NCBI GenBank assembly: GCA_002269645.1
Contig: NIVC01000594.1
Location: forward strand, 248,001-312,000
DNA from: Macrostomum lignano
Taxonomy: Eukaryota
Reading direction: 5' to 3'
DNA length: 64,000 nucleotides
The stretch's first letter is position 1, and every line of letters begins with the position of its first letter. A program made the translations under genes and the position numbers. Positions 13,273-43,162 of this stretch are shown here, in pieces. The notes beneath the pieces are model-generated. The model saw nothing but the letters and a program-made list of their open reading frames with translations, had not been told where the DNA came from and did no database searches.

Positions 13273-13276
13273 GACT

Positions 13277-13308
<32 letters not shown>

Positions 13309-14026: not shown

Positions 14027-14058
<32 letters not shown>

Positions 14059-14402: not shown

Positions 14403-14434
<32 letters not shown>

Positions 14435-14603: not shown

Positions 14604-14635
<32 letters not shown>

Positions 14636-14999: not shown

Positions 15000-15031
<32 letters not shown>

Positions 15032-18252: not shown

Positions 18253-20237
18253 TCAAATGCGGAAGCTGTCCCCTTTGCCGTCGATATGCCTCAGGCGCAG
18301 GTAGAAATCCGAGCCGACACCCTGCATGGTTTCGAAGGTGAGGCGGCCGCCAAGGTAGTGCGCGTAGGCGCGCGAGGTTGGCAATCCGAAGCCGAAGCCG
18401 TGCATCGGGCCCACCGAACGGGACTCGGAGACCCGGTCGAAGAACGACTCATTCTCGTCGCTGTGCTTGCCGGAAGTTGAGAAATGGTACTCAAATATGC
18501 TGGTCGCGATGTCGTGCGCAATGCCGCCGCCGCGATCGCTGAAGCTGCAAATTTTAATGTAATTAGCAAAAATAGACCGTTATACGCTATTTTTTCTACT
18601 CATCGGTAACTTTAAGTAGGGTAGTGCGAACATTTCTAGCGCTTTTTGATTAATGTGTGAGAATGAACGCACACACGCAACCCAGCCAAGACTATTCAAA
18701 ACTGCTTCTTAAGTTATTCTAGAAAATTATTCTACGAAATAATTTTAAATTCGAGAACAATGGAGAGTCTAGAAATGGCGCTAGAGAGTCTAGAAATGGC
18801 GCCAGATAGTCTAGAAATGGCGCCAGATAGTCTAGAAATGGCGCTAGAGAGTCTATAAATGGCACCAGAGTCTAGAAATGGCGCCAGATAGTCTAGAAAT
18901 GGCGCCAGATAGTCTAGAAATGGCGCTAGAGAGTCTATAAATGGCACCAGAGTCTAGAAATGGCGCCAGGGCCAGAGAAGCTAGAGTAGAAATGGCGCCA
19001 GAGAAGCTAAAAATGGCACCAGAGAATCTAGAAATGGCGCCAGAAGAAATAGAAATGGCGCAAGGAAAGCTAAAAATGGCGCCAGAGAATCTAGAAATGG
19101 CGCCAGAAAAACTAAAAATGGTGTCAGAAAAACTAGAAATGGCGCCAGAGAAGCTAGAAATGGCGCCTAAGACGCAAATACAGTCGTACAGACTCACCGA
19201 ATAATGAAATCGACATCATTGTTAGCCACTGTGATGGTGACCTCGGGCAGGGAGCCGACCTTGGCCCTGTTGTGCTCAACCGTGGCGCGGAACGCGTTCT
19301 TCAGCACCTCGGTAACGATGTACTCAACCGGCTGGATGATGTAGGAGAAGGCCGCCTTCCTGTTGCCGTTGATCTTCACCGCAGGCGCCAGGCCGTACTT
19401 CATCTGGCACAGCTTGGCCACGTGAGCGGCCCGGCTGTCGATGAGGTCGCCAGGGCAGAACCGGGTGCACACGACGCCGACAAAGTCCGGACGCTCCTGG
19501 CGCAGAGCCAGATGGTGCTCGCACAGCAGGCGGATGCCCAGCCTCGATGTCAGGGTCTTGTCAAGAAACTGCCTGACCAGATGCGGATCCCGGATGTGCC
19601 GGCTGCACTCGCGGAAGCCCTCGGCTAGCATGGTGACAACGTCCTTGTGGTCGTCGAGCAGCTGACGAACTACGCCGGAGTACTGCTCCTCCTCAGCCAA
19701 GTTGGTGACGGTGGGGTAGTCAGACAGGATGTGGAATGCCCGGATGTACAGCTCGTGCACGGACAGGATGGTCGGATTGCAGCCGATGATGAAGGGCAGC
19801 GAGCGGAAGTCGTCGATCCGATGGGCGATGCGAACTGGCAGCTCCTTCTGCAGGTACTGAGCCGACCGGAGCACGTAGTTCTCGTCGGTGGCGCGGCCGG
19901 AGTACAGCAGCGAGGCCGGGGTCAGACGGACCGAGTTCTTCTTGGCCGCGGCGTCGATAGCGGACTGGTTGTAGTAGGAGGTCACGGATCTGGTGCGCTC
20001 CCGTTCCAAGCTGCTGTTGCCGTTGCTTCCATTCCCGCTGTTGGCGGCTGTCCCAGCTGAAGAGTTGCGCGACGAATCAAGGAACTCGTTGCTGCGCAAG
20101 GCCAGGCGCGAATTCGATAGCTTAGACATCGATCGACAGCGAACTGGCGATGCCTGCTGCTGGCATGGCACGGGCTTCGCCAGACACGCGGTCAATGCCG
20201 AGTGCATAGGCAGTATAGCTTGTGTACTTTTGCGCAT
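18253..20237 (-). CDS. BCKDK: Branched-chain alpha-ketoacid dehydrogenase kinase, about 443 aa. Exons 19198..20237 and 18253..18544
   Basis: [21 protein letters not shown]...[29 protein letters not shown] (N box), spliced [12 protein letters not shown] (G1 box), [16 protein letters not shown] (G2 box). The phase-2 intron is consistent. The exact start Met is uncertain. Confidence 0.95.
18765..19167. repeat. About 21-bp minisatellite (agtctagaaatggcgccagat / gctagaaatggcgccagagaa) in the BCKDK intron
   Basis: Visible tandem units. Confidence 0.93.
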
Positions 20238-22328: not shown

Positions 22329-23639
22329 CGAGGGGTGATCAAAAGTTCTGCAACCTTTTGTTATAGCTTTTAGTTATAGAATCGGCAAAAGCCAAAAACT
22401 TACGCATATGCGGCTATATCTGTTTGCTATATTTATATGCATTTTTGGCTTTCAAATGTGCTCCAGTAAAATTTCACAGCCATATATTTTCCATGTGTTT
22501 TCAGTAGCTGATGGAAACATCAAAAGACAGTGTTCGCTTCTATATCTTTATGTGCATGCAACTTGGTTGCAAAGTGACTGAGATTCACACCGATCTCGTG
22601 AATGTTTTAGCTGACTCTGCTCCATCATTTGACACGGTTGCCCGCTGGCTGCGCCATTTCTTGGAAGGCCGGGATAGCTTCAACGAGGAACCGAGGTCTG
22701 GCCGACCCCGGACATCCGTGACCGAAGATGTCGTGGCCCATGCCGATGCAATAATTCGTGAGGATTGGAGCATTACGCTGAGATTCCTTGCCAATGAGCT
22801 TGGTGTCAGCTATGGAAGTGCTCATAACATCATGCATGAGCAACTGGGCCGCACAAAGACCTGCGCTCGGTGGGTACCCCATCTTCTCACTCCGGAGCAG
22901 CAAGCAGAGAGGGTGCGCATCTGTCTCTTGTGGCTGCAAATGTTTGAGCCCCACGGCCCACGACGACTGTCGGATGTCATCACAGGAGACGAATGTTGGA
23001 TCCCCTTCTTTACCATGAAGGATAAGCAGTCCAACATGGTCTGGCTGGCAGAAGATGAGCCGAGGCCCAAGGTGCTGAAGACCGGATTCCGCAGTCGGAA
23101 GCGGATGTTCGCCATTTTTTTCAACTCTCAGGGTGTTGTATCGGTGAGCATCCTTCCAGCGGGTGCCACAGTGACTGCCAGGTACTACACAGACACTGTT
23201 CTGCCAGGCGTGCTGCAGGAGCGGCAGGAACGTGCGCGAACCAGGCATGGACCTCGACTCCTGCTGCACCATGACAATGCGGCACCGCACAGAGCGGCTC
23301 AACCATGGCGTGCCTGGAGCAGCAGGGGGTCCGGCTGCTGCCCCATCCACCCTACTCTCTAGACCTAGCACCATGCGACTGTTGGCTGTTCCCGAGGATC
23401 AAATCCGTCATTTCTGGGAGGCCGTTTTCACGCATACAAGACCTTGCCCAAGCGGTACATTCAGCTCCATAGGGTATACCAACTTCGGAGTACCATGACT
23501 GCTTTCAGACATGGTACATTGCGATGGTGCACAGATAGTGGTGGAAAGTACTTTGAGAGACTGTGACACTGATTAGACGCCTCGACTGCTGTAACACTGA
23601 GTTGTGAGGTCACTTGCAGAACTTTTTGATCACCCCTCG
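22329..23639 (+). mobile_element. Mariner (Tc1/mariner, DD34D) transposon, 1311 bp, frameshifted transposase
   Basis: TIRs cgaggggtgatcaaaa(a)gttctgcaa differ by a 1-nt indel; TA duplicated at 22327-8 and 23640-1. The ORF from 22511 has HTH, WVPHLLT, ITGDECW and HHDNAAPH. After a frameshift near 23300 it reads HPPYSLDLAPCDCWLFP, then hits a premature stop. Confidence 0.97.
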
Positions 23640-24534: not shown

Positions 24535-25210
24535 TCAACCCAAACCTGAACTCAAACCCAAAACTCAAACCCAATTACCGAAACCCAAACTCAAGCCCAA
24601 TTAACTCAAACCCGAAGTCAAACTCAAACCCAAACCCAAACCCGAAGTCAAACTCAAACCCAAACCCAAACCCGAAGTCAAACTCAAACCCAAACCCAAA
24701 CCCGAAGTCAAACTCAAACCCAAACCCAAACCCGAAGTCAAACTCAAACCCAAACCCAAACCCGAAGTCAAACTCAAACCCAAACCCAAACCCGAAGTCA
24801 AACTCAAACCCAAACCCAAACCCGAAGTCAAACTCAAACCCAAACCCAAACCCGAAGTCAAACTCAAACCCAAACCCAAACCCGAAGTCAAACTCAAACC
24901 CAAACCCAAACCCGAAGTCAAACTCAAACCCAAACCCAAACCCGAAGTCAAACTCAAACCCAAACCCAAACCCGAAGTCAAACTCAAACCCAAACCCAAA
25001 CCCGAAGTCAAACTCAAACCCAAACTCAAACCCAAACCCAAGCCCAATTAACTCAAACCCAAACTCAAACCCAAACCCAAGCCCAATTAACTCAAACCCA
25101 AACTCAAACCCAAACCCAAGCCCAATTAACTCAAACCCAAACCCAAACCCAAGCCCAATTAACTCAAACCCAAACCCAATCCCGAACTCAATCCCGAACC
25201 CAAACCCGAA
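24535..25210. repeat. 30-bp minisatellite (aactcaaacccaaacccaaacccgaagtca) with AAACCC-type flanks
   Basis: Perfect 30-bp period across 24600-25020; source of the NPNPKS and GFGF ORFs. Confidence 0.97.
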
Positions 25211-25337
25211 CGCTAGAGTTGAGAATAAAATAAAGTTGTTAAACCAGAGCATCGATTTCAGACAGTTGAAACTGAACAAATTTGCAAAATTTCTTGTTAA
25301 AATTCGAGAGATAAATTCAGATTCGATGGGTTTAATC

Positions 25338-28300
25338 TCAGATATCCGGCAGGTCCACAGAGTTCAGCAATCTACTAACCAAAGTGTCAAAGGTGGCCAG
25401 AGCAGTGTTGAGATGCTGGGTGCTCAGATAGACGCCAGCCCAAGCCGGCCGGGCTGCCTGCTTCAACTTGATCACCCGATTGGCGCAGTCGGTCCGCTGA
25501 GCCGGTGACGCCATCGGCTTGGCCAGCATGTGGTAGCACAGCAAGGCCAGCTCGGCAGTGAAGCCAATCAGCCGCTCCTCCGGCGTGCCTTCGCCAGGCG
25601 ATTTCAAATGCAACTTGGGCACGGGCCTGAGTTCGATCTCCTGATCGGGCAGCAGGCCGCAGAACAACGCCTGGAACGGGCTGGGCTTGTCAGCCTGCGA
25701 CACGGCGCTCTCGGCCGGCTCCAGCTTGGCTAGGGGCTCCGGCAGCCAGCGGGAGGCGGCGCCGGCCACGGCTGACGAGTCATCGGCTGCCCCGTTGTTG
25801 AGCACGGCGGGATTCCAGGCGAGGCCCAGAGTGACAGCGTGCACCGGCAGGCTCGTGAGCAGGTGCGGCCCGATGCCGCCGCCGTCCCAGTCGCAGGAGA
25901 CCACGCCTGATAGGCCGGGCAAGCTGGTGAGGCTCTTGGCCAGGCCTGGTTAGAGGGAACAGAGGAGCACATTATAACACGACGAAGTGTGCATTTAACA
26001 ACATAGTCTATGGCCAAACCGTGGTACGAGTATTAAGTAAACAGAGATATTAATATCGAAACCAAGTATGCGGTCCTAATGACCTATAATATATAGTCAG
26101 CTCACGCGTAGTTCGATCTGATTCACTTCAGTGATTAAAAATGCACTTGTACAGTAAACCGTAGATGTTGTAGATCACTGTAGGCCTGATCTACATTGCC
26201 AGTAGTGTTGGTCAGCGTCGTTGCGGTAGCGATATCAGTTGTTCCACTGTGTTCCGAGACTGGCTCATCACTGTCAATGAATCGACCATCACAACACACG
26301 TTGCTCTTGATTAGGCGGCTCAACAGTGGTCTGTAGGAGTTCACGTCACAACCACGATGCAGTGCACGCTATATTCTTACGTTCTTACACAAATGCGTGC
26401 CGGACAACACCGAGGCTGCAATCTTCTGCCGAGGCGCTGACGGACAGGCGAGTGAGCTTCCAAGATGTCAGCAGTTCGTCTACCTCGGCGGTCTGGTTCC
26501 CGACGTCCGCGAGGATCTGCGGCGTCGCCAAGGACTTGCCTGGGCTGCCTTTCGTTCTATAAGGTCAGTCCTGCAGTCCGAGGCCCTACCGGACCGCCAG
26601 AGGGCGGCGCTGTTCCAGGCGGTGATCGAGACCGTCCTGTTATACAACGCCGAGAGCTGGACGCTGACAGACTCGCTCGAGGCTCAAGTCGACGCGGCGC
26701 ACGCTGGCCTGCTGCGCGCCGTCTTCAAGATCGGCAACGAGCGAGTCACCAACACGGCGCTCTACCATCGCGCCGGCCTGGCCCGTCCTAGCGACCTGCT
26801 GCGCCGTCGGCGACTCCAGCTGGCAGGTCACGCTATCCGCGCCGAGGCCTACTGTCCGGAGCCGGTGCAGGAGGTGCTGCTACTTACGTTGCAGGCACCC
26901 TACCGGCGGGGACAGGCGAGGACTCGGCGCTACGTCGACTGTCTGCTGGCTGACGCCGGCGCCCCGGACTCTGCCGGCGGTGCGGCCTTTGTTCGCGCCC
27001 AAGCTTCGAAGCGCGCCATCTGACGCTGCTTTTGCGAACTGGCAGCGTACTCTGTTGTTGTTGTTACACAAAGCAGGTGTCCAGATATTCCATCTGTAGG
27101 CCTGTAGAGCTGTCGAGATCTTGGACTCAGGGAATGCGTCCGGCTCAACTCAATAAATCATTGATTTGATGCGTGGACATTCCAAGAAATCATTTCATTT
27201 GGAAAGTGCAGCAGCTCTATTAATCCTACAGGGTACTTCGGTACTCCTTATGGAAGTCCGTATTGCTAAAACAAGACGATCTATAGAAACTGTGTTTACC
27301 TGGACACAGGCGAGTCCGTTGCAGACTGTGACAGCCGGTAAACGACAGCCACGCGCCTGTGGCGGGCGCCAGAACGAATTCTGGCAGCGCAGAGTGCAGA
27401 TAGGTTGCCCGGTCCTCGGGCCGGTCTCTGGGCAGGCAGTGATCAATGCAGGTGATTGGCAGTTTCTGCAGCCAGGGCGGCAATGAGAAACCGGACGAGG
27501 CCAAGTAGAGATGCTGCCGGCCGAGGCCCAGCCAGACCGGCGCCTCCTGCTCAGGGCCCTGGGCCAGGTGAGCGGACAGACGGGGGCCCAGGTGCAGCGG
27601 GCAGTTCGGCGGGAAAGCACCTAGCAATACATCTGCCTGGCTTTGCACCTGCGGGAGCGTTGGGGATCGACGTGTTCTGGCGGGATGATGAAGGATTATC
27701 GACATCCTAAATCCACTCAAACCTGAAGGATTATCGACATCCTAAATCCACTTGACACTGAAGGATTATCGACATCCTAAATCCACTTGACACTGAAGGA
27801 TTATCGACATCCTAAATCCACTTGACACTGAAGGATTATCGACATCCTAAATCCACTTGACACTGAAGGATTATCGACATCCTAAATCCACTTGACACTG
27901 AATGGTTATCGACATCCTAAATCCACTCGACACTGAATGGTTATCGACATCCTAAATCCACTCGAAACTGAAGGATTATCGACATCCTAAATTCACTCAA
28001 ACCTGAGGGATTATCGACATCCTAAATCCACTTGACACTGAAGGATTATCGACATCCTAAATCCACTCAAACCTGGAGGATTATCGACATCCTAAATCCA
28101 CTTGACACTGAAGGATTATCGACATCCTAAATCCACTTGACACTGACGGATTAGAGACATCCTAAATCCACTTGACACTGAAGGATTATCGACATTCTAA
28201 ATGGTCTAAGCCATCAGCTCCTTGCTCACCTGAGTCAAATCTGACACTGCAATTCCAATATCAATGGCTAGCACAGGCGTGAGGCAGAGCTCCTGGGCAG

Positions 28301-31300
28301 ACCGAACCACCCTGCGCAGATCCTCCTGCGCGTACGGACAGGCGTGCGCGGTGCTGCCCAACCGAAAGAACAGGTGCAGCTGGTTGGCCCGCATGCAGGC
28401 GGCAGACTCGGCTACGCTAATGAGAGCCTCCGGCCGAGGCAGCAGGCCCGAGGAACAGTCGACAAGAACGCCGCGAACCAGAGTGGTGGGCCAGTCCCAC
28501 ACTCTGATGCCGGGCACCAGGCCCATTGAGATCTCTGCACAGACTGTTAGCAGGGATGACAGCACCTGAGGCGTGAGCGGTTTATTATCAATCAATTGCT
28601 GGTTTGTTGGATTTAAAGGCAAGCCTAGCAGTTTCACATTGTTTAGTATTTGATAGTAAAATCATTTTTGCAGCCCAATAATTGCAAACTGATGGCCTCA
28701 AAATCTCACCATGTGACAACCTGAAAATCTCACTCTGATAGTCTCAAGATCTCACCCTGACAGTCTCAAGATGCCACCCCTGCAAGTCTCATAACTCGTA
28801 TTCTCACTCTAATGGCCTCAAAAAGATCTCATCCTGACAGTCTTAAAATCTCATCCTGACAGTCTCAAAATCTCACCCTGTGATTGCCTCAAAATCTCAC
28901 CCTGTGATGATCTGAAAATCTTAAAATGGTAGCCTCAAAATCTCACCCGATAGTCTCAAGATGTCACTCCTGAAAGAATCAAAACCTCATCCTGATAGTC
29001 TCAAAATCTTACCCTGTGATGTCCTCAAAATCTCACCCTGTGATGATCTGAAAATCCTAAAATGGTAGCCTCAAAATCTCACCCGATAGTCTCAAGATGT
29101 CACTCCTGAAAGAATCAAAACCTCATCCTGATAGTCTCAAAATCTTACCCTGTGATGTCCTCAAAATCTCACCCTGTGATGATCTGAAAATCCTAAAATG
29201 GTAGCCTCAAAATCTCACCCGATAGTCTCAAGATGTCACTCCTGAAAGAATCAAAACCTCATCCTGATAGTCTCAAAATCTTACCCTGTGATGTCCTCAA
29301 AATCTCACCCTGTGATGATCTGAAAATCTTAAAATGGTAGCCTCAAGATCTCACCCCTGATGGCCTCAAAATCTCACCCTGACAGTCTTAAAACCTTACC
29401 CTGACAGTCTCAAAACCTCCCCCTGTGGTAGCCTCAAAATCTCAGTCTCACAACCTAACTCTGAATAGCTGATATAAAAAATCTCACCCTGATCTCAATT
29501 AAAATCTCACTGATGGTCCTGCAAGAATCGCCAATAAATCTGAGCCTATAAACCCCATAGAAAACCGGTGTCAGCCTCACCGCAGCCCCGTTGAACAGGC
29601 CGCGAGCATCGGCAGCCAGCAGCCTGATGCCGGAGCTGGTGACCTCCAGATAATAGCCCTCAGGCCGGCCCCTGCACACCCGGTGCCCGATCTCAAGCGA
29701 CACTCCCTGCACAGGCTTGGCAACCACCAGGGTCCTGGGGCGGAACTGGGCCAGCCTGCCAGCCAGCCAGTGTAGCGCCGGCTCGCCATCCTGATGATTC
29801 AAAGACAGCACCAGCGGCTGCTGCTGTTGCTGACCAACTGGCAGTCGAAAATGCTGGCCAATAAGCAGCTGAGACTGCTGCGGTCTCGGCCAGAACGCTC
29901 TGTCCAGCACGGAGTCCTTGGCGAAGTCGGACCCGTTCATTGGCCGGGCGCGCGCCTCGTCTGCTGGAACAGCAACCGCCGACGCGGCGGCGGCAGTGGC
30001 GCCAGAGTCGGAACCGTTGGCCACTGATGGCGAGGTTGATGAAGCTGCCGACATTTGAGTTGGCTGCGAGTACAATTGATGCTGAGACTGCTGATGATGC
30101 TGCTGGGATATGAGCTGCATCAGTTGGACAGACTTGTCGCTTAAGCTGCACAGATCAAAGCCGTTCTTGTCCGCATAAGGCCTGAGCGTGTTGGGGAGGC
30201 GGATCACTGCTATTGGGAAACTTATAGGGGAATTCAGTGTGGGATTACCTGTATATTATATTTTATATTAATTCCCTAGCAACAGCTGTTGTTTTGAAGT
30301 TGACAAGCAGAATAATAATATGTAATAAGATTGCAGTTAGTCATGAACATTCCACTGACTCCCTGACGAAACACACGCATGCTGTACGCAAACACGTCGC
30401 TCACGCAGGGTGTACAGCGGCGCTGGCTCCCTAATCGTCAGGCAGTTGTACATGTACACACTGTGTGTTTGAAGCCATCGCGATGAGAGAATTGCATACC
30501 AACACGGAAAGTCTCAAATCAATGTGACTAAAATATAACTAAAAGCAAACTAGTCTACTAACTAGTAGACTCTTTTAGATATTTTGCATTTTTATAATTT
30601 CTCTTAATGTATTTTTGCCGACATGGCAAAAGCTGCTAATCTATAGGAACAAATCTACCTACCTATTTACCTACATAACTACCTACCTACCTACTTACCT
30701 ATATATCTACCCACCCACCTACCTACCAACTTGTCTACCTACCTATTTACCGACCTGCCTACCAACGAACTAACCTTCTTATCTACCAACCTACCTACTT
30801 GCCTATTTACCCGCCTACCTACCCATCTACCCACCTACTAACCAACCTAGCATCGTAAGTACCTACCTACCAACCTTACGTACCTACCAACCCTACCTAC
30901 CTACCAACCCTACCTACCTACCAACCCTACCTACCTACCAACCCTACCTACCTACCAACCCTACCTACCTACCAACCCTACCTACCTACCAACCCTACCT
31001 AACCTACCAACCTACCTAACTACTTACCTACCAAACTACCTACTTACCTATCTACCCGCCTACCTACCGGCTACCTACCTACCTACCTATCAATTTACAT
31101 ATCTACCTACCTACCAACCGTACCCACATTACAAAGTGCAGTCGAACACCCAGTCTACTTACTCAGCTTCGAGTTTCTAAAATTAGCAAACCTACAATAC
31201 AAGAACAATTATAGCAAGAGAAGAGAAGAGTGAACGCAACACACACAGAAACACGCGAGCATATTTGCGAATCATGCACACATAGAAAATAAAAAAAATG

Positions 31301-34300
31301 TTCAGGAAACAAGACGAGCGACGCCCAAACAGACCAAATGGGCCTCTCTGAGAAGTGTTTCATTCTCTCTCTCTCAAAGCCGCCCTGTGCCGCAACTGGC
31401 TGACCTCAAACTAGCTGCAACCGTGTGGAACAATGCAATAAATTAACATTTCATACATTATATACTGTACACTTTAACAAGTAAGAGTTATATTTTTTCA
31501 ACTTGGACATTTAGGTTAAATAATATTAATACTATATTATAATGCACAGATAGATCGTCACGTGAGGCAACGCATGAGAGAAAGCGATAACGCTGGGAAT
31601 TTATTTATTTATTTGGTTAACTGTAAGCAAGCGTGAATGGCCTAGACGTGAGATGGCAATAGTGGAAGTGTGAAAGAGAATAGATTCGGCGAGAGGGTGA
31701 TTTGAAAAGGTGCTAATGCTGAAATAGGAATATATTGGGGTGAACGTGAATAGATCAGGTGTGAACATGAATAGATCAGGTGTGAACGTGAATAGATCAG
31801 ATGTGAACGTGAATAGATCAGTTGTGAATGTGAATCAGGTGTGAGATCAGGTGTGAACATGAATAGATCAGTTGTGAACGTGAATAGATCAGATGTGAAC
31901 GTGAATAGATCAGTTGTGAATGTGAATAGATCAGGTGTGAACGTAAATAGATCAGGTGTGAACGTGAATAGATCAGTTGTGAACGTGAATAGATCAGTTG
32001 TGAACGTGAATAGATCAGTTGTGAATGTGAATATATCAGGTGTGAACGTGAATAGATTAGTTGTGAACGTGAATAGATCAAGTGAACGTGAATAGATCAG
32101 GTGTGAACGTGAATAGATCAGGTGTGAACGTGAATAGATCAGGTGTAAATGTGAATAGATTATGTGTGACGTGAATAGATTGTGTGAACGTGAATAGATT
32201 AGGTGAACGTGAACAAGGCTCAAGATTTCAACAGACAACAGCACAGCAATTATAATGACTCACCCCTGTTTCACATAGACTGAAGGATTAGCGCCGTATT
32301 GAATGAGCAGTCGGACCAGCTCCAGGTCAGCTTTAATCAAGCACAGATGCAAAGGAGTCACGCCATCCCTATTGGCTACGTTAGGATTAGCACTCCGTTC
32401 TAGAAGCAGTCTGACGCAGGCTGGCTGGGCAAAATGGAAGGCCCAGTGCAGAAGGGTGTTCTGCTGACTGTCAGTGCGATCCAGACTGTTCACGGAGATG
32501 CCAATCTGCAGCATGCGAACCAGGCCCTCCGTGCTGCCATTTGGGGGGGGGGGGTTATGATTTTATTCATTAACGAAGCAAATGCATGGCCTCTGCAACA
32601 TCGAATGTACATGGCTCTAACAGCGTTCTTACATCCTTAGGGACACTGCAAGCATTTTAGCGAGATGTCAACGACGTTAGCAACACCACAATAACCTTGG
32701 CGACCCCATAATGACCTTGGTGACACCACAATGGCCTTGGTGACACCCCAATGGCCTTGGTGACACCCAAATGACCTTGGCGACACCCCAATGACCTAGG
32801 CGAAACCACAATGACCTGGGCAACATCCCAATGACCTTGGTAACACTCTAATGACCTTGGCGACACCTAAATGACCTTGGCGACACCCCAATGACCTTGG
32901 CGAAACCACAATGACCTGGGTAACATCCCAATGACCTTGGTAACACTCTAATGACCTTGGCGACACTCTAATGACCTTGGCGACACTCAAATGACCTTGG
33001 CGAAACCACAATGACCTGGGCAACATCCCAATGACCTTGGTAACACTCTAATGACCTTGGCGACACTCAAATGACCTTGGCGACACCCCAATGACCTTGG
33101 CGAAACCACAATGACCTTGGTGACACCCTAACGACTTTGGCGACACCACAGTGGCCTTGGTGACACCCCAACGACTTTGGCGACACCACAGTGGCCTTGG
33201 CGACACCCCAATGACCTTGGCGACACTCCAATGACCTTGGCGACATCTCAGTGACCTTGGTAACACTACAATGGCCTTGGCGACACTCAAATGACCTTGG
33301 CGAAACCACAATGACCTGGGCAACATCTCAGTGACCTTGGTGACACTACAATGGCCTTGGCGACACCCCAATGGCCTTGGCGACACCCTAATGACCTTGG
33401 CGACAACCCAATAATGACCTTAGCGACACCTCAATGACCTTGTAAAAACTGCAATAACCTTGGAGACACCACAATGACCTTAGCGACATCCCAAGGACCT
33501 TGACGACACCCCAATAATGACCTTGGCAAAACTCCAAATGACCTTGGCGACACCCCAATGACCTCTAGCGCCATTCCAATGATCTTAGCAACGCCTTAAT
33601 GACTTGAAGCAAGACCAAGTGTGACCTTAACGATAGTAATATTGTTTAAGAGACAACTTAACAAAAAAAGCAATCCTTTAAAAATGTAATGTCAAAAAAC
33701 GCTTGACTCAGTTTTTTAGTCCTAATCAGAGCACTAATTAGCAAGAGAAGACCAAACCTAAAGGCTACGGCTATTTTGTTACAGAATTAACAGTGTGTGC
33801 GTTTATCTGCGGAATTAAAAAACTCATTAATTTCTTCCTGCACAAAAAAATCTTATATACATGAATTCAACCGTGCATATAAGATATGTAAAATCATATT
33901 TGATTAGACCACAAATACAGCATTGCAAGGCATACTTGTACAAATTTAAATGCATTTCATCAAATACACAAGAGACAAACAAGAGAAAGACAAAACACAC
34001 ACAGACAGACAGACTGCTTAACTCACTCAGCCTGAGAAATTAACTGGATGCAGTGCTGCAGGAATACGGCCAAAATATCCGGATGAAAGTTTGCATCCGC
34101 CAATGCGGTCTTCTGCGATTCGTTTAATAACCGCGGATCGATGCCCGTGTTGAGCAGGATGCGGATGCCGTCCAGCATCTTTTGCTGAGGGGTTCAGGAG
34201 TGAATTAGAGGGAAATGTGTCTATCTGTGTGAACTAAGCACTGGACAGCTGTGACCTAAATAGATTTAAGCTAAACACTGGCAAATGGTGACCTAAACAC

Positions 34301-36224
34301 TGGTGGTGGTGACCTAAACCTTGGAATGGGGACCTAAGCATTGGTGGTGGTGACCTAAACCTGGGGATGGTGACCTAAACACTGGTGGTGGTGACCTAAA
34401 CACTGGGGATGGTGACCTAAACACTGGGGATGGTGACCTAAACACTGGGGATGGTGACCTAAACACTGGGGATGGTGACCTAAACACTGGGGATGGTGAC
34501 CTAAACACTGGGGATGGTGACCTAAACACTTGGGGATGGTGACCTAAACACTGGGGATGGTGACCTAATCACTGGGGATGGTGACCTAAACACTTGGGGA
34601 TGGTGACCTAAACACTGGGGATGGTTACCTAAACAAAACCGATTGAGTGAACTAAAGTACCAAGCAATCGCCTCAATAAAACACTGATCATTTCAGTTTT
34701 CTAGAATATTTGGTTAGAACAAAACATCAGGTAATAAATTACCTGACAGGCGATATGCAGAAGCGAGCCCTCATTAGTTGTGTACTGCATCAGCTTTTGC
34801 AGTTTCTCTTGGTCGGCGCTTTCAACTGAAACGAGTCATTTGAAAACAGCAATAAAAATAAATAAGATTATTGATTTGGCAGTTTAAATCTATACGATTT
34901 GTCTAATTAAAGTGTGTCTTTCTCAGAGAACTCTTAAGCGCGCCACGCCCAAAAATGATTAATTCAGCCTAAGAGCTTTTGAATGCCTTCATTTCAATTT
35001 TCTTACATATTATCCTGCAGGCTTTCAATGCGAAAATAATCAATAATTTAATTTATACCCTTGACTCTACTTCTCTTCCTCACCCCATTCTCTACTTCTC
35101 CCTCGCCCTCACTACCTCTCTCCCTCTGCCAGATTCATGCATAAAAACTAACAATAATAATCGTATCACTTTCTATTTTCTGTGTATTTTGCGAGCTCTG
35201 GCCCCCAATTGCGCCGTTTTAATGTTATGTGTGTTGTGTACGACCTATTTAGAGCGCTTCGTATAATGGTTGCACGATCGATATTTTAGGCCTCTCCGTG
35301 CGCGTGGAGTACGAAGGTCCAGTTTTATTACTTTTAAATATGGCCTGTCCCACGCCTCGGTCAACTTCCCTCTTATCTCTCTTATCAGACTGTTTACAGC
35401 CGTTTAAAACTTTCACTATCCGCCTGTTGCTAAATATAGCTTGTCAAGTTTTAGTTCGTTCTATCAAACAATTGAACATCATTACCTTCTACATCTCCCT
35501 CTCTCCCTCCCTTCCTCACCCTCTCTACCTATCTCCCTCACCCTCTCTACCTCTCTCCCTCACCCTCTCTACCTCTCTCCCTCTCTCCCTCACACTCTCT
35601 ACCTCTCTACCTCTCTCCCTCACCCTCTCTACCTCTCTACCTCTCTCCCTCGACCCTCACCCTCTCTACCTCTCTCCCTCACCCTCTCTACCTCTCAACC
35701 TCTCTACCTCTCTCCCTCACCCGCTCTACCTCTCTACCTCTCTCCCTCACCCTCTCTACATCTCTACCTCTCTCCCTCACCCTCTCTACCTCTCTCCCTC
35801 ACCCTCTCTACCTCTCTCCCTCACCCTCTCTACCTCTCTCCCTCACCCTCTCTACCTCTCCCTCTCTACCTCTCTCCCTCACCCTCTCTCCCTCACCCTC
35901 TCTACCTCTCCCTCTCTACCTCTCTCCCTCACCCTCTCTACCTCTCCCTCTCTACCTCTCTCCCTCACCCTCTCTACCTCTCTTCCTCACCTTCTCTACC
36001 TCTCTCCCTCACTACCTCTCTCCCTCACTACCTCTCTCCCTCACTACCTCTACCTCTCTCCCTCTCCCTCACCCTCTCTATCCTCTTCCTCACCCTTTCT
36101 ACCCCTCCGTGGCCCTCCACCCAGCCCTCTTACCAGTAGACAGCATGACTCGCAGAATATCTGATCGACATTCTACAATGCATTTCTTCATCTGCAGGAA
36201 CAAAGACTCCAAACTGGAATCCAT
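25338..36224 (-). CDS. Ankyrin-repeat plus GH20 (beta-N-acetylhexosaminidase-like) fusion protein, about 849 aa, probably catalytically dead. Exons 36134..36224, 34743..34825, 34027..34184, 32264..32533, 31163..31191, 29581..30206, 28230..28565, 27300..27648, 25338..25945
   Basis: Nine exons join in phase through GT-AG sites to 2550 nt with no internal stop. Ankyrin motifs: GSLLHIACQ, NTLLHWAFHF...LLERSANPN, DGVTPLHLC...LIQYGANPS. GH20 domain-2 motif EGYYLEVTSSGIRLLAADARGLFNGA; barrel start DWP..RGVLVDCS..NQLHL; late motif CDW.GG.......S.P......LAWN. The 29-nt exon is supported only by splice signals and phase. Confidence 0.82.
26345..27065 (+). mobile_element. 5'-truncated RTE-like non-LTR retrotransposon fragment, antisense in the last ANK-GH20 intron
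   Basis: ORF 26397..27023 has FVYLGG, LLYNAESWTLT, RRRRLQLAGHAIR and RRGQARTRRYVD, typical of the RT thumb/C-terminal region of RTE-type LINEs. It ends in a (TGT)n tail at 27053-27065. Confidence 0.85.
27689..28202. repeat. 35-bp minisatellite (tgaaggattatcgacatcctaaatccacttgacac), intronic
   Basis: Head-to-tail units with no spacers. Confidence 0.96.
28700..29450. repeat. Degenerate aaaatctcaccctg-based repeat with an about 110-bp higher-order period, intronic
   Basis: A block from about 28900-29340 repeats at about 110-bp spacing. Confidence 0.88.
30655..31125. repeat. (CCTA)n / cctacctaccaac microsatellite, intronic
   Basis: Direct inspection. Confidence 0.93.
31740..32215. repeat. 21-bp minisatellite (gtgaacgtgaatagatcag(g/t)t), intronic
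   Basis: Direct inspection. Confidence 0.95.
32690..33600. repeat. 20-bp minisatellite (atgaccttggcgacacccca), intronic
   Basis: Direct inspection. Confidence 0.95.
34283..34635. repeat. 21-bp minisatellite (ggtgacctaaacactggggat), intronic
   Basis: Direct inspection. Confidence 0.95.
35485..36110. repeat. CT-rich repeat (ctctctacctctctccctcacc), intronic
   Basis: Direct inspection. Confidence 0.94.
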
Positions 36225-37000: not shown

Positions 37001-38265
37001 TTATAAATAATTTTTTTTCGTTTCAACCAGCAAAAACTTGGCGGGAAAATCAGCTGCAGGGAAAATATGCAAATGTTAACTTGTAAGATAAATAAAATAG
37101 AAATAATTATTTTAAACATGCCAGTCTGTTGGATAAAAAACTGCTTTTTTGTGTCCCATGCATGCCAAACCAAATAATAACTATGACGAATTTTATTGAT
37201 TAACAGGAAAACTGCAAGTTAGTCAGGTCTGACTGACAACACCTAGGCTGGCCCAGCAACTGGGGATCTGGGAGGCTGGCCCAGCAACTGAGGATCTGAA
37301 AGGCTGGCCCAGCAACTGAGGATCTGAAAGGCTGGCCCAGCAACTGAGGATCTGAGGCTGGCTGCCCAGCAACTGAGGATCTGGGAGGCTGGCCCAGCAA
37401 CTGAGGATCTGAAAGGCTGGCCCAGCAACTGAGGATCTGAAAGGCTGGCCCAGCAACTGAGGATCTGAAAGGCTGGCCCAGCAACTGAGGATCTGAGGCT
37501 GGCTGCCCAGCAACTGAGGATCTGGGAGGCTGGCCCAGCAACTGAGGATCTGAAAGGCTGGCCCAGCAACTGAGGATCTGGAAGGCTGGCCCAGCAACTG
37601 AGGATCTGGGAGGCTGGCCCAGCAACTGAGGATCTGGGAGGCTGGAGCAGCAACTGACGATCTGGGAGGCTGGCCCAGCAACTGATGATCTGAAAGGCTG
37701 GCCCAGCAACTGAGGATCTGGGATGCTGGGCCAGCAACTGAGGATCTGGGAGGCTGGGCCAGCAACTGAGGATCTGAGAGGCTGGCCCAGCAACTGAGGA
37801 TCTGGGAGGCTGGCCCAGCAACTGAGGATCTGGGAGGCTGGCCCAGCTCCTGAGGATCTGGGAGGCCGGTTGGCCCAGCAACTGAGGATCTGGGAGGCTG
37901 GCCCAGCTCCTGAGGATCTGGGAGGCCGGTTGGCCCAGCAACTGAGGATCTGAGAGGCTGGCCCAGCAACTGAGGATCTGGGAGGCCGGTTGGCCCAGCA
38001 ACTGAGGATCTGGGAGGCCGGTTGGCCCAGCAACTGAGGATCTGAGAGGCTGGCCCAGCAACTGAGGATCTGGGAGGCCGGTTGGCCCAGCAACTGAGGA
38101 TCTGGGAGGGCAGCAGCCAGTACTTGACATTACCTGCAGTGCTAATTGTGCCTAAAAAACGAAAGCATCAAAAATCGGTCAAAAAATCAGCTGCAATGAA
38201 CGGGACTGCAAGGAAACTACAGTAAAACGAATGTACTCACAGGAAAATGAGCCATTTGTTAACAT
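37001..38265 (-). CDS. Candidate 31-aa small ORF in three tiny exons (38241..38265, 38134..38151, 37001..37053): MLTNGSFSCTISTAADFPAKFLLVETKKNYL
   Basis: Strong acceptors (ttttaccAG, gttttttAG, attttccctgcAG) and donors (GTGAGT, GTAATG) join in one open frame. No homology evidence. Confidence 0.35.
37245..38110. repeat. About 28-bp minisatellite (ggctggcccagcaactgaggatctggga)
   Basis: Direct inspection; source of the ORFs at 37200-38130. Confidence 0.96.
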
Positions 38266-38606: not shown

Positions 38607-41600
38607 TCAATGCCCAGCTCCGTTGCCAGCCGAGCCGATGCCGCCGCTGCCGCTCTCGCCCAGCAGCACCCTAGAGTCGTCCATGAGGCTCGGCTGAGGC
38701 CTTTGCGCCACCAAATTCTTGGGCAGCTTATCGTAGTAGAGCTGGTAGAGGTCCCTGTCAGCTGGGCAGCTGCAGCGGAAGGCCTCGCAGTCGTACATGG
38801 CCGAGTAATAGGCCTGCAGGTTGTTCAGGTCCGCCGGCACGTCAAAGTCGCGATAGAACTGCCGGGGAAATCGGGGTGTTTATTGACGACTTTTCAATGT
38901 GTTTATTAACTAGATGGTCTTGCGGGTGTTTATTGGCGATACTCGGGGTGTTTATTGGCTATACTTAAGGGTGCTTATTGGCGATATTTGAGAGTGTTTA
39001 TTGGCGATACTTGAGGGTGTTTATTGGCAATACTTAAGAGTGTTTATTGGCGATACTTGAGGGTGTTTATTGGCGATATCTGAGGGTTTATTGGCGATAC
39101 CTGAGGGTGTTTATTGGCGATACCTGAGGGTTTATTGGCGATACCTGAGGGTGTTTATTAGCGATACCTGAGGGTGTTTATTGGCGATACCTGAGGGTGT
39201 TTATTGGCAATACTTGAGAGTGTTTATTGGCGATACTTGAGGGTGTTTATTGGCGATATCTGAGGGTTTATTGGCGATACCTGAGGGTGTTTATTAGCGA
39301 TACCTGAGGGTGTTTATTGGCGATACCTGAGGGTGTTTATTGGCAATACCTGGGGTGTTTATTAGCGATACTTGAGGGTGTTTATTGCCGATACTCAAGA
39401 GAGTTTATTGCCCATACCTAAGGGTGTTTATTGTCTATTGCCCATACCTAAGGATTTTTATCGCCGATACTTAAGACTGTTTATTGTTCATACCTAAGGG
39501 TGTTTATCATTGTTACTTAAGTGAGTATAGTGCCTATACGTAAGGGTGTTTATTGCCGATTAGGCGATTATTAAAGGTGTTTATTGCCGATATTTAGTGT
39601 GCATTTAGGCATATTCATGGGTGTTTATAGGCGATTCACAGAGCACTTCGGGTAGAGTTCATTGTTGCCTTACAGTGACTTGAAGTCCAGCAAATTGGGA
39701 ATATTCAGAGTCGTTAGAGACCAAAGTTACCTTGCCAGCCATCTTGACGTGATGCAGTTTAGGCATGAGCTGGCAGTCAGCATAGGTGAGCTCATCAGAC
39801 AGCAGGAAGCGGCAGCCGCGGGAGCCCAGGAACGAGTCAATTCTACGCAACACGTGCAACAGCGGAGTCGAGTTCTCAGTCTTGAGCATCAGGTTGAGAT
39901 TCTTGTACAGATCATAGAAAGCTTTCTCCGCTTCGCCTTCGTCGGCTGATTCTTTGGGCAGAGCCAGACAGGGACATTTCCAGATGTCCATGAGCTGCTC
40001 GATTTCGTCGTTGGTGTCGAAGACGGTGTTGGACAGGTCGCTGCCGCGCGGGTCGGCGCCTTTGATCACCCGGGCAACAGGGAGGTGACGGCCAACCTCC
40101 AGAGCTTGATAGGCCTCAGGCGGCATGTCCGGGTTCACAGTGGTGACAAACAGATTGAGGTATTTCTTCTCGGCTAAGATGTAGAACACCATGAACCATT
40201 GCTGGCTGATTGGGCAAGGGCCTTTGTCCTCCTTGCAGATATGGGAAGCCTATGGTAGAGGTAAAGACAGGTAATTATCCTAGTGTAGGTTAAGTTAATA
40301 CACATTCATATTGGAGCAAATTAGTATTTTCTACTACAGACAGTATTTGGTGCTCTTTAGAATTGCTTGCATATCTATGCAAAAATAATAAAGTGCCTGC
40401 ACAATGTGCATTCATATGTTATATATGCACACAAAGTATCAATACGAGTATATACTTTTTTTGCTAAAGTTCTATTTCTAATGTCACTTTATTGTCCTTT
40501 AGCTCACGCTGCTTGCACTTAATATTCTAGCTTTGCTCAATCTAGAATAGTTTTTTTGCAAAACTAAAGGACTTCTTTATAGGTATTGAATATACCAAAA
40601 TATGCCATACACATTAAATGTGTATTCCAAAAGCCCAAAATCACTTTTTGTATACCAATGGCAACGTGTATACTAAACTTCTTGAATGCACCCAAGAAGT
40701 TTCTGGCATTTATGCCTTTTACCTGACTATGACTTTGCCAAAAAGTCATGTATCCTATTAAAAATATTCAGATAGCAAAGTTAAAGCTTTTATTGAAGAA
40801 ATTGCAGTTAACCTAATGATGGTTCTAAAAAATCATTCAAACTATCAAAAGTCTAAAATATACTAACTAAGTAATGTTACTTAGTAACATTGTTACTCAG
40901 AGCAATGTTACTCTTGCTCTGATGATCTAAATAACATCATTTTGGACAAATAGTACCAACTCTTTTTTTCATACTAAATTTAATATCTTTAAAATCAGAC
41001 AATGGAAACAAAAGTTAAAAACTCAAATATAACAAGAATTCAACCATATACTTATAGTAAGTTAATTAACAAGCAAGCAAAAAATTGAAGTAAAAGCTGA
41101 CAAATGGGTAACTGGCTGCAGTAAATATATAGAATGACTGTGGTAAAGATTGCTCTAGACCAATGAGCCAATGAAAGTTGCATATGAATTATGATTACAG
41201 TGTGTTTTATCCTCCAAAGGGTGAAAATCTCACTTGCTTGGGCAATATTTGAATGCACATCTATGATTTTTGGCATTACAAAAAGAAGGAGCAAAAATCA
41301 ATGAAGCTAAAGCACAGTGGTGGCAAATATTCTATTGCTTTAAAAGTTTATATGTTTTTTTAACTTTTTCTATAGATGTCTCTTTGTCAAAGTAGCCTAA
41401 CAAAGAAGTCTAAATGCATTTAATCAAATGTACTTTTGCTCCTTTTTGCTAGCTTGTTGACTTACTGTAAGTCCATGGTTGAGCTAATGCATGCCCAACC
41501 TAAAATTTCACCCATCCAATGCAACTTAGTTTTGTTCAGATTTGCAACTTAGTTTCTCCTAATTGCAAAGTTTCTCTTGATTTTGACTTAATTTCCACTT

Positions 41601-43162
41601 TGTATATGGCTTTTCTTGCCTTTTTTCTCTTTTTTTCTCTCCCCCCTTTTCCTTCTTCCTCTTTTCCTCTTTTCTTTGTTTTTTCTTCCTCCAATTTTTC
41701 ATTTTTTGTCTTTTTGATTTTGCAACTTACCTTGGCTGGTGGCTATAGGACCCATCTGGTTCTGATAGGTTGGAGGGTATTGGGCAAGTAAGGTTAAGTT
41801 CTTACTATATTTGCATTTATAACTTTTGTTTCCATAGTCTAATTTTAAAGAGTTTAAAGTTAATATAAAGAGAATTTCCACTTTTAATTTGTGTAAAATG
41901 AGGTTATTCGGATTATTAGAACCTATAGTCAGGAAGGTAGCCTTTTTCATAGAAAATTCTGGTGCAAAAAGAGGTTGGATATGCGCTGTGCTGATACATT
42001 CTAGCCCAACAATAGGCAAGGAAGAAAGATCTGGCACAGTATAGCATGAGACAAAAAATCAGCATATAATTTGGTGCAAAACAAAGACTTCATACTAGAC
42101 AATATCTTTTTAAGACAAAATTAGCATGTTATTTCTTTTTATTAGCACTTTTTTGCTATTGTATCAACAGCTTTTTTAATTAACATATATTAATATTGCT
42201 TTTTCTATGAAACAAATTCAAATACAAGCTTTATTGATATTTTTCAAATAGAAAATTATTTATTTTTGTATTTTTCAAAAAGTTGCAATATATGGTATAA
42301 TGCAAGTGAACTTTTTTTTAGGAATAGGCCTAGTTTTGGGACATTGCACAAGCAATTTTTTTGATAAGATTTATTTTAATGCATAAGGCAATCAATTTTT
42401 TATAGGATTTGTTATGGCATAGGCATGCCATGATCTTGACTATGGATTAGAACAAAAGATATAATGAAAAGTAACACTTTTTTATGATAGCCTTTGCATT
42501 TATAGCTTAATTAAATTTTGTATCTAGGACTAGAACTGAGATGTTTTGCTAGATAGATATATACCTATAGTCTAAAAATTTAAGGTTATCTTCAAGTTTC
42601 GTTCGTTTAATTCCAACACCCACCCCCCACCACCCTTGAATAGAGGGCGAAAATAATTCCGGAAATAATTAAACGAACGAAACTTGAAGATTGCCAAATT
42701 TAAGTTTATTTATTATAATCTATTTTTATTTTTAAAAATAAATAAGAAGCAGTAATAGAAAAACAGTTATTAATTGAAAAGTCAAAGGCCTAACTAATCA
42801 TGTCAATCATATACTTACCAACAAACATTTTTTGTGAATTAAAATGAATTGAAAAGTCATAATCTTAGACATAAAAATAAAAGGCTAAAATTCTAATATA
42901 ATTGTTTATTTCAAACCAAATAAAAAAATAAAAATATAGACATGTAGAGAAAAATATAGACAAAAAAGTATATTTTTTAAATTATAGGCCTAGCCTATCT
43001 CATCTCATGTCTTGATAATGTCAATAAATAGGGGCCTATAGATGAAAAGAAATATAGGAGTTTTTGCAGTTGGCTTCAAAATTGTAGGCTTACCTTGATA
43101 AATAGCTCAACAACAGGCTTTCCATCCTCAACATCACCCTCGAATCCATTCATGTCTGACAT
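38607..43162 (-). CDS. CLIC: Chloride intracellular channel (GST-fold) protein, about 279 aa. Exons 43094..43162, 39731..40249, 38607..38858
   Basis: KPVVELFIK/AS...GPCPISQQWFM, FVTTVN, FLLSDELTYADCQLMPKLHH, AFRCSCPAD. Both introns are phase 0 with GTAAGC and GTAACT donors. Confidence 0.94.
38870..39630. repeat. About 21-23 bp minisatellite (gagggtgtttattggcgatacct) in CLIC intron 2
   Basis: Direct inspection; it degenerates toward both ends. Confidence 0.93.
42588..42691. repeat. 104-bp element with perfect 25-bp inverted termini (mini-MITE-like) in CLIC intron 1
   Basis: atcttcaagtttcgttcgtttaatt ... aattaaacgaacgaaacttgaagat; no clear TSD. Confidence 0.6.

Follow-up and report, generated by a model that had tools for sequence, protein, structure and literature searches.

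An ankyrin-GH20 fusion gene of Macrostomum lignano with the sequence features of a glycosidase pseudoenzyme

The window analysed here is a stretch of 64,000 nucleotides (nt) from the flatworm Macrostomum lignano (assembly GCA_002269645.1, contig NIVC01000594.1, positions 248,001 to 312,000 of the forward strand). Positions 25338-36224 of the window, read on the minus strand, hold a single intact gene whose product joins ankyrin repeats to a module of glycoside hydrolase family 20 (GH20). An earlier reading of the DNA letters (the original prediction) had taken this product for an ankyrin-GH20 glycosidase pseudoenzyme, and our comparisons bear it out: the catalytic Asp-Glu pair, the beta1 Arg and most motifs of the catalytic face are replaced. 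We conclude that the gene probably encodes a cytosolic, non-catalytic ankyrin-GH20 protein that serves in binding or as a scaffold and is the fast-evolving representative, in flatworms, of an ancient eukaryotic family; we put the probability of this reading at roughly 0.7. Databases already list the gene's product as a hypothetical protein, so the novelty lies in how it is interpreted and in the view of the whole family.

In outline, the substrate-assisted GH20 machinery would have been dismantled stepwise within the family while the fold and the domain order were kept. Such a protein would not hydrolyse N-acetylhexosamine (HexNAc) glycosides by the GH20 mechanism. We infer a binding or scaffold protein, in which the ankyrin repeats would hold a protein partner and a new binding site would occupy what was once the active-site face. 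Bilaterians still conserve this face, which in them reads G-P-R-L-S (containing a new Arg), C-P-G-T-x-A-W-N-S, D-W-S-G-x-G-H and L-A-W-N. To judge from the residues that have gone, the ligand is unlikely to be a terminal beta-HexNAc held in the classical manner. Of the earlier suggestion of a cytosolic N-acetylglucosamine (GlcNAc)-binding or scaffold protein, the non-catalytic role is supported, whereas GlcNAc binding is weakened by the loss of the beta1 Arg, the beta8 acid and two of the four pocket Trp.

A single intact gene with eight coding exons

Eight segments joined at canonical GT...AG sites yield an open reading frame (ORF) of 2496 nt and 831 residues, with the A of the ATG at 36224 and the final base of the stop codon at 25338. 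We built this model by mapping an annotated hypothetical protein, BOX15_Mlig015421g1 (P0001, 831 residues; first found at 98% identity with the concatenated minus-strand ORF pieces), back on to the window and checking the splice sites. The spliced protein differs from P0001 at one residue (F143C). All seven introns start with GT and end with AG, and their phases are mixed (1, 0, 2, 2, 0, 0, 1). Over its entire length the spliced ORF is collinear with about 25 orthologues (830-1180 residues), some of them from transcriptomes or RefSeq models, and its start aligns with theirs. The original prediction had described nine in-phase exons and about 849 residues; the single intact frame stands, with the count corrected to eight coding exons and 831 residues and the phases to mixed ones.

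Coding exon 1, 36134..36224, minus strand: residues 1-30 plus 1 nt; ATG at 36224-36222; donor GTAAGA; N-terminus aligns with orthologues.
Coding exon 2, 34743..34825, minus strand: residues 31-58; first ankyrin-like helix pair (GSLLHIACQ).
Coding exon 3, 34027..34184, minus strand: residues 59-110; degenerate ankyrin repeats; donor GA/GTGAGT, deduced from the P0001 junction ...ISQAD/TEG.
Coding exon 4, 32264..32533, minus strand: residues 111-200; clear ankyrin repeats; Ank_2 match at residues 115-195 (window 32523-32281).
Coding exon 5, 29581..30181, minus strand: residues 201-401; Q/S/A-rich linker, then, from about 29793, most of the GH20b (zincin-like) domain, which is confident in the AlphaFold2 (AF2) model.
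Coding exon 6, 28230..28565, minus strand: residues 402-513; end of GH20b and beta1-beta3; RGVLVDCSSG at 28475-28446, its Ser440 taking the place of the substrate Arg of active relatives.
Coding exon 7, 27300..27648, minus strand: residues 514-629 plus 1 nt; barrel beta4-beta7; HLGPRL at 27594-27577, with Arg536-Leu537 in the catalytic Asp-Glu column.
Coding exon 8, 25338..25945, minus strand: residues 630-831 and stop; beta8 CDWDGGG at 25895-25875; LAWNP at 25823-25809; C-terminal helical bundle.
Motif RTDCAN, within 25338..25945 (coding exon 8), minus strand: instance of the family-invariant T-D-x-A-N, in the helical bundle.

A homologue search with the full-length protein was dominated by unrelated ankyrin proteins, and its informative matches were the three M. 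lignano models. Apart from P0001, these are two proteins from an older assembly. P0002 (1043 residues) is a defective model of the same gene that starts at Met62 and reads through intron 7, and is probably wrong. P0003, likewise defective, lacks about 100 residues of exon 5 and ends after exon 7; it carries six substitutions and may represent a third copy.

Domain order, predicted fold and assignment of the module to GH20

The protein runs from ankyrin repeats through a GH20b domain and a degenerate (beta/alpha)8 barrel to a C-terminal helical bundle. In Pfam searches with the spliced protein, the ankyrin repeats scored 62.4 bits against Ank_2 (clearest at residues 115-195, with three PF00023 stretches), and the second domain of GH20 enzymes, Glyco_hydro_20b (PF02838), was found at residues 331-426 with 29.0 bits against a cut-off of 26.1; orthologues score 35-49 bits for it. 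The catalytic-domain family Glyco_hydro_20 (PF00728) gave no match in the window protein even at E<=10. The domain search proposed beforehand therefore recovered Ank and Glyco_hydro_20b but not Glyco_hydro_20 in the window protein itself. Homology of the barrel to PF00728 is established indirectly, through orthologues that pass the cut-off (P0062, 26.2 bits; a coral, 43.1; the protist member P0141, 41.7), the family profile, a match in the PDB and the predicted structure, and with it the predicted ankyrin-GH20 fusion.

The PDB match came from a phmmer search with residues 294-831, which returned GH20 hexosaminidases at the top (7BWG, E 1.9e-5). That alignment spans GH20b through beta1-beta2 and pairs RGVLVDcssg with RGVMLDvarh and anqLHLff with lnaLHLhl. 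A PDB search with the ankyrin-containing family profile was dominated by ankyrins and DARPins, and only its lower GH20 rows were informative.

An AF2 model computed on a 117-sequence alignment reached a mean predicted local distance difference test (pLDDT) score of 77.3 and a predicted template-modelling (TM) score, pTM, of 0.84; it replaced a run on nine sequences that gave a pLDDT of 52. In the model, beta1-beta4 and beta7-beta8 appear as alternating strands and helices, three helices form the C-terminal bundle, and the GH20b domain lies at pLDDT 80-96. When it was compared with the PDB by Foldseek, bacterial and human GH84 O-GlcNAcases came first (E ~1e-16, TM ~0.5) and GH20 followed just behind (8PXV, E 4e-15). 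GH84 ranks first because it shares the three-domain layout. We considered membership of GH84 itself and rejected it: the likeness is structural, the sequence match has an E of 2.4 and is confined to the N-terminal domain, the GH84 catalytic-domain family is absent from the Pfam matches of the window protein and its orthologues, and the active relatives use Asp-Glu, not Asp-Asp. The module is assigned to GH20 because of PF02838, of PF00728 in the orthologues and of the Asp-Glu in active relatives.

No signal peptide is apparent, as had been predicted. The N-terminus, homologous to the orthologue starts, is hydrophilic (the highest 15-residue Kyte-Doolittle mean in the first 65 residues is 0.95, a crude check and not a predictor), and the same hydropathy check found no membrane-like segment in the protein. 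These features fit a cytosolic protein.

The catalytic motifs are replaced

We compared motifs in MAFFT barrel alignments with active bacterial relatives and in a column table drawn from the 117-sequence alignment; what we say about the pocket is deduced from where residues fall along the barrel sequence. In the lines below, upper case marks a residue in >=60% of rows, lower case one in 35-60%, and a dot the lack of a majority; there are 88 bacterial and 23 bilaterian rows.

beta1: bacterial RGvmLDiSRdkVP; bilaterian RGVLLD.S.GRiP; window RGVLVDCSSGLLP
beta2: bacterial NqLQLYtEHTFAY; bilaterian NQlHLY.rf; window NQLHLFFR
beta3: bacterial VPNQNsFGH; bilaterian vPvlDv; window PVLAIDI
beta4: bacterial NvGcDEt; bilaterian nIGPrLs; window HLGPRLS
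beta5: bacterial fWgDi; bilaterian lC.n; window poorly aligned (LYLASSG in MAFFT)
beta6: bacterial WGYE; bilaterian EYG; window poorly aligned (ITCIDHC in MAFFT)
beta7: bacterial CPGTSsWnS; bilaterian CPGTaaWNS; window APATGAWLS
beta8: bacterial TDWGD.GH; bilaterian dWsG..h; window CDWDGGGIG
after beta8: bacterial AWn; bilaterian AGLaWN; window LGLAWN

H/N-x-G-x-D-E is a recognised GH20 signature (PMC11308363). At this position the window protein reads HLGPRL (residues 532-537, window 27594-27577), as predicted: Leu537 stands at the general acid/base Glu and Arg536 at the Asp that orients the 2-acetamido nucleophile. The column is anchored independently, since "nvGlDEtediG" of P0141 aligns with "hvGlDEvfliG" of the solved GH20 structure 9FYL. 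The predicted absence of the substrate Arg in DCSSG (residues 437-441, window 28460-28446) also holds, with Ser440 in the beta1 Arg column where bacteria have D-I-S-R-D; this Arg is missing in most orthologues too. The late motif CDW.GG...LAWN, likewise foreseen, is present as CDWDGGG...LAWNP at residues 647-675 (window 25895-25809).

Replaced or lost are the beta1 Arg, the beta2 Glu-His, the beta3 Asn-x-Asn...Gly-His, the beta5 Trp-Gly-Asp, the beta6 Trp and the acid of the beta8 Trp-Gly-Asp. At beta8, T-D-W-G-D of bacteria corresponds to D-W-D-G in the window protein and D-W-S/A-G in orthologues. Two of the four pocket Trp positions are kept (beta7 and beta8), and those of beta5 and beta6 are lost.

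An intact Asp-Glu elsewhere had been named as a result that would overturn the pseudoenzyme idea, and a sequence scan found no such dipeptide anywhere in the barrel of the window protein. We also examined the barrel's two Glu-Asp dipeptides as a relocated pair and rejected them; one forms part of Q-E-D in helix alpha2, the other of P-E-D in the loop between beta6 and alpha6, and the one in alpha2 does not qualify because the acidic position there is also conserved in active enzymes.

The loss is shared across an ancient family

To place the protein, we ran an exhaustive HMMER survey with the non-ankyrin part, in which the top 150 cluster representatives were considered and 30 cluster names looked up. 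It returned 384 matches at E<=1e-3, of which 21 reach E<=1e-10, a homology well outside what chance would give. Ranked highest are about 25 eukaryotic proteins (830-1180 residues) in which the match lies 300-430 residues from the N-terminus and the architecture is the same. The orthologue survey called for beforehand yielded a family reaching from choanoflagellate to amphioxus. Members come from annelids (Ridgeia, Owenia), a nemertean (Tubulanus), a priapulid, arthropods (horseshoe crabs, mantis shrimp, sea spider, centipede and the insects Nilaparvata and Pediculus), molluscs (Saccostrea, Nucella, Argonauta), a nematomorph, the nematode Trichuris, echinoderms (Strongylocentrotus LOC581115, Patiria, Antedon), a hemichordate and amphioxus. 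Outside the bilaterians there are members in corals (Pocillopora, Stylophora), a sponge (Sycon), a choanoflagellate (Diaphanoeca), a red alga (Porphyridium) and a protist transcriptome (GILK01013802). No vertebrate, Drosophila or Caenorhabditis protein was among the 30 looked-up clusters, which is not proof of absence.

Databases call the members "uncharacterized" or, misleadingly, "Tankyrase" or "Ankyrin-1" (for instance in Stylophora, Nymphon and Porphyridium). UniRef names the coral members 'beta-N-acetylhexosaminidase' though the Glu is missing, and the activity that this name implies is probably wrong. The red alga member is P0104, and the ankyrin-GH20 fusion predates animals. An amphioxus isoform, X2 (P0072), lacks the beta7-beta8 region.

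A family profile built from ten orthologues and the window protein matches bacterial proteins of about 600-660 residues at 1e-60 to 1e-87 over GH20b, barrel and C-terminal domain. These are ordinary GH20 proteins (PF00728, 57-64 bits), as a PDB search confirmed. Against this background, Asp-Glu is absent in 23 of the 23 bilaterian rows, most of which read G-P-[R/Q/N/K/C]-[L/I]; the few exceptions include G-M-R-L (Ridgeia) and G-A-T-L (Patiria). Early branches keep remnants of the pair: D-L in the coral (P0174), D-Q in the sponge (P0099) and G-E in the choanoflagellate (P0116). The protist member P0141 keeps every bacterial motif. Scores for PF00728 form a series as well, with 41.7 bits in the protist, 43.1 in the coral, 35.0 in the choanoflagellate, 20.3 in the sponge and none in the flatworm, and in bilaterians only the first ~40 profile positions match. 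The predicted catalytic loss is thus old and graded, common to the whole ancient family and not private to the flatworm gene.

In the literature we found no paper on an ankyrin-GH20 protein, a GH20 pseudoenzyme or an ankyrin-tethered glycosidase fold. The original prediction had been unsure whether the architecture was characterised; the proteins are present in databases, mostly as "uncharacterized". The most thorough recent phylogeny of eukaryotic GH20 dropped all sequences longer than 750 residues, and the family would be excluded from it for that reason (PMC11308363).

Conservation and a second copy in M. lignano

Across phyla, family members share 39-47% identity over about 900 residues (priapulid and horseshoe crab 44%, crinoid and priapulid 39%), and Tachypleus and Limulus share 96%. 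Even with the flatworm protein included, about 30 columns of the family alignments do not vary, among them D/R of beta1, the G of G-P-R-L-S, T..W.S..G of beta7, the beta8 W, L-A-W-N and the C-terminal T-D-x-A-N. The C-terminus of the flatworm protein is shorter than those of the other members.

M. lignano has a second copy of the gene (L001, contig NIVC01001694.1) that shares its exon structure and is likewise flanked by a CLIC/GST-like gene upstream and by a branched-chain ketoacid dehydrogenase kinase (BCDHK) gene downstream; the two are syntenic copies, because the order of neighbours is the same. Their coding sequences differ at five positions, four synonymous and one non-synonymous, and the ORF and all 14 splice sites are intact in both. 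These counts agree with constraint, though five differences are too few for a test of non-synonymous against synonymous rates (dN/dS). Introns 1-4 differ in 1.4-19% of aligned bases, a range inflated by misaligned repeats, and introns 5-7 are ~99.9% identical.

When 25338-30181 is set against 30182-36224, exons 5-8 and introns 5-7 are ~99.9% identical to the second copy and all five coding differences fall in exons 1-4. The pattern points to a boundary left by recombination or gene conversion, or else to assemblies that mix haplotypes or homeologues.

It had been argued that the intact gene suggests selection for a non-catalytic role. The family-level conservation agrees with this, but it is not a dN/dS result for the window gene: in these sequences, selection is seen at the level of the family. 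Homology, residue loss and purifying selection, which together define a pseudoenzyme operationally, are all found here, and inactivity itself is predicted from sequence.

Alternative explanations

A dead barrel might still bind its sugar. The protein could then be a cytosolic reader of HexNAc, either O-linked GlcNAc (O-GlcNAc) or N-acetylgalactosamine (GalNAc), in which the barrel would act like a lectin and the ankyrin repeats would recruit an effector. We consider this unlikely, even though the fold and domain order best match the O-GlcNAcases BtGH84 and CpOGA in Foldseek (E ~1e-16) and the lack of an apparent signal peptide, together with the ankyrin repeats, should place the protein where O-GlcNAc is the main HexNAc modification. 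Two pocket Trp (beta7 ...AW..S and beta8 DW) and their surrounding loops are kept family-wide, M. lignano included, and GH18 chitinase-like lectins are glycosidase pseudoenzymes that retain sugar binding. The residue losses point the other way. The beta1 Arg (O3/O4), the beta8 acid (O4/O6) and the Asp that positions the 2-acetamido group, whose roles are established in the GH20 literature, are lost; so is the beta5 Trp, while the beta6 Trp is Tyr in bilaterians and absent in M. lignano. The AF2 model, moreover, shows little order in the M. lignano pocket around beta5-beta6. The new Arg at the former catalytic position suggests a different, possibly anionic, ligand. A wider proposal, that the family is an ancient cytosolic glycan or ligand reader derived from a HEXD- or OGA-like ankyrin hexosaminidase inactivated stepwise before or around the origin of animals, seems to us rather doubtful. 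Were a reader the right description, the new conserved Arg would make the binding site, for example for O-GlcNAc-modified or otherwise modified proteins or for an anionic sugar. That the protein is still an enzyme, with relocated or different catalytic residues and another substrate or chemistry, is highly improbable. Catalytic-face loops conserved in bilaterians would be unusual for a purely structural remnant, M. lignano has an Asp650 after Trp649 (DWDG), and half of the pair survives in the early branches (coral D-L, sponge D-Q, choanoflagellate G-E). Yet the beta1-beta6 motifs and the beta8 acid are altered together, with the beta7 loop kept; bilaterians have no conserved acidic pair on the catalytic face, the replacements are Arg and Leu, and Asp650 is not conserved, orthologues having Ser or Ala.

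Several observations weigh against our preferred reading of a non-catalytic binding or scaffold protein, and some of them would equally suit a decaying relic, a gene that is losing the family function while its ORF is still open. The flatworm protein is by far the most divergent member, with ~28% identity to all others as against 39-47% among other phyla. Missing from it are the block that other members conserve behind LAWN and, at beta1, the G-R of the family motif D-x-S-x-G-R. In favour of a relic, its introns are swollen by repeats and a putative retroelement fragment. The AF2 model has low confidence at beta4-beta6 (pLDDT 38-61 for trimmed residues 250-300) and in loop 433-456, so that the M. 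lignano barrel may be unfolded in part, or the protein may have moved away from the family function. A comparison between the two copies has almost no power, with five differences and a 3' half nearly identical even in its introns, and the conservation of the pocket loops would fit continued binding of some sugar just as well. We nevertheless regard a relic as very unlikely: 831 codons are open in two separate copies with 14 of 14 splice sites canonical, the coding differences between them are four synonymous to one non-synonymous, and about 30 family-invariant residues are kept, including T-D-x-A-N and L-A-W-N. Flatworm proteins are, besides, commonly fast-evolving. Least credible of all, and close to negligible, is the idea that an ankyrin gene and an adjacent GH20-like gene have been joined only by prediction. 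Intron 4 is indeed 2.1 kb long and repeat-rich, but the same domain order recurs in ~25 species, including transcriptome-derived proteins (Diaphanoeca and the transcriptome shotgun assembly entry GILK01013802) and RefSeq models. The exon 4/5 junction VKQG/PYADKNG matches "GK..G..P.DLA" of the orthologues directly behind the final ankyrin repeat. The intron phases fit together, and a separate GH20 protein would have no plausible in-frame start.

Introns, repeats and neighbouring genes

Each of introns 1-6 is largely a tandem-repeat array. The ORF list shows only disconnected pieces of the gene because these introns are filled with repeats and intron 7 carries an antisense ORF, and the gene's invisibility there had been put down to repeats from the start.

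27649..36133, minus strand: span of introns 1-6, interrupted by coding exons 2-6; each intron largely a tandem-repeat array.
27689-28202: tandem-repeat array, 35-nt unit, in the span of introns 1-6.
28823-29444: tandem-repeat array, 136-nt unit, same span.
30655-31124: tandem-repeat array, CTAC-type, same span.
31740-32213: tandem-repeat array, 21-nt unit, same span.
32669-33586: tandem-repeat array, 20/100-nt unit, same span.
34271-34635: tandem-repeat array, 21-nt unit, same span.
35494-36107: tandem-repeat array, CT-rich, same span.
25946..27299, minus strand: intron 7, containing an opposite-strand ORF of 208 residues at 26397-27023 (plus strand).

Both flanks of the gene have tandem-repeat arrays of their own (24537-25211 and 37245-38109). 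The arrays are mutually unrelated, their units range from 4 to 136 nt and their copy numbers reach 115, a striking density of minisatellites within 14 kb, and their lengths are not equal between the two M. lignano genome copies. The intron 7 ORF (26397-27023, plus strand) has no Pfam match and no further copy within the window; we read it as resembling the C-terminal part of a non-LTR (long terminal repeat) retrotransposon reverse transcriptase (…LFQAVIETVLLYNAESWTL…).

Downstream of the gene, the ORF at 19194-20237 (minus strand) is BCDHK-like (BCDHK_Adom3, 154 bits), and between the two lies a fragment of a mariner/Mos1-type transposase at 22511-23362 (plus strand; HTH_48, HTH_32 and part of DDE). 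The upstream neighbour, at 39659-40192 (minus strand), is a weak GST_C_2/CLIC-like ORF that adjoins a 10-kb AT-rich block (40001-50000, GC 0.30-0.39). An uninterrupted ORF of 738 residues at 9827-12043 (plus strand) encodes a complete M13 neprilysin-type peptidase (Peptidase_M13_N and Peptidase_M13) and appears intronless in an intron-rich region. Other coding pieces are an ASC/ENaC channel fragment (447-1535, plus strand), a tubulin-tyrosine-ligase-family exon (2982-3818, minus strand), a repetitive ORF of 720 residues with weak coiled-coil-type matches (12944-15106, minus strand) and a cytochrome P450 exon (60253-61410, plus strand, 191 bits). The segment 4001-6000 has a GC skew of -0.45 and long ORFs open on both strands, typical of simple repeat.

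Significance

This is the first description we found of the pseudoenzyme type for GH20, the family of HexA, HexB and HEXD; it was known before for GH18 lectins and for Klotho. The apparent decay series, from a fully equipped protist through half-dismantled choanoflagellate, sponge and coral proteins to the fixed G-P-R-L-S of bilaterians, makes a good natural system for the transition from enzyme to binding protein. Two circumstances may explain why the family was overlooked: the ~30 looked-up members include no vertebrate, Drosophila or C. elegans protein, and long proteins were removed in surveys of GH20. Function is directly testable in M. lignano, a tractable species in which RNA interference and transgenesis are available.

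Comparison with known systems

Among known enzymes, close relatives in sequence are bacterial three-domain GH20 proteins (~600-660 residues, such as P0113, a JGI 'hexosaminidase'), which have the same order of GH20b, barrel and C-terminal helical domain. Homology extends over the whole 540 residues, with CPGTxxWNS, DW and AWN in common. Unlike the window protein, they have no ankyrin repeats and keep all the motifs of the catalytic face (DISRDKVP, QLYTEHTFAY, NQNSFGHM, NIGCDET, FWGDI, WGYE, CPGTSSWNS and TDWGDxGH).

In the PDB, alignment across the barrel of the active member P0141 is limited to 9FYL/9FYM, 8BAL, 5A69 (GH20C), 2EPK (GcnA), 4H04 (lacto-N-biosidase) and 8QK1 (T. suis HEX-2). With GcnA and HEX-2 among them, the suggestion that the barrel recalls bacterial or HexD- and GcnA-like GH20 enzymes is upheld, although the similarity of P0141 to HEX-2 is remote (E 0.005). 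GH20 subfamily 1 and GcnA-type enzymes (S. gordonii GcnA 2EPK, S. pneumoniae GH20C 5A69, T. suis HEX-2, 9FYL) share the barrel with P0141, including xVGxDE; they differ from the window protein in being active and in having neither the GH20b N-terminal domain nor ankyrin repeats. The resemblance to HEXD is indirect and would be one of motifs, and C. elegans HEX-2 to HEX-5 are counted with the same enzymes. T. suis HEX-2 falls in GH20 subfamily 1, a HEXD-like group that includes human HEXD, and HEXD is likewise nucleocytoplasmic (PMC11308363).

In structure the best match is to the GH84 O-GlcNAcases (BtGH84, C. perfringens NagJ/CpOGA and human OGA), which share the succession of N-terminal alpha/beta domain, barrel and helical bundle. 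The sequence signals, unlike theirs, are those of GH20: PF00728 in the orthologues, and Asp-Glu instead of Asp-Asp in the active relatives. GH84 and GH20 belong to the same clan, and their active enzymes use the same substrate-assisted mechanism.

With Tankyrase and ankyrin-1 the family has the ankyrin repeats alone in common; it lacks PARP and SAM domains, and these names are annotation artefacts. We know of no described GH20 pseudoenzyme, nor of one fused to ankyrin repeats. The closest analogy would be to the GH18 chitinase-like lectins (YKL-40, Ym1) and to Klotho (GH1), in which a glycosidase barrel was kept after loss of the catalytic acid and reused for binding. Those proteins belong to other GH families and are secreted or membrane-bound, whereas the window protein is predicted to be cytosolic. 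For Klotho the term 'pseudoglycosidase' is in use (PMC10628560, PMC12665127).

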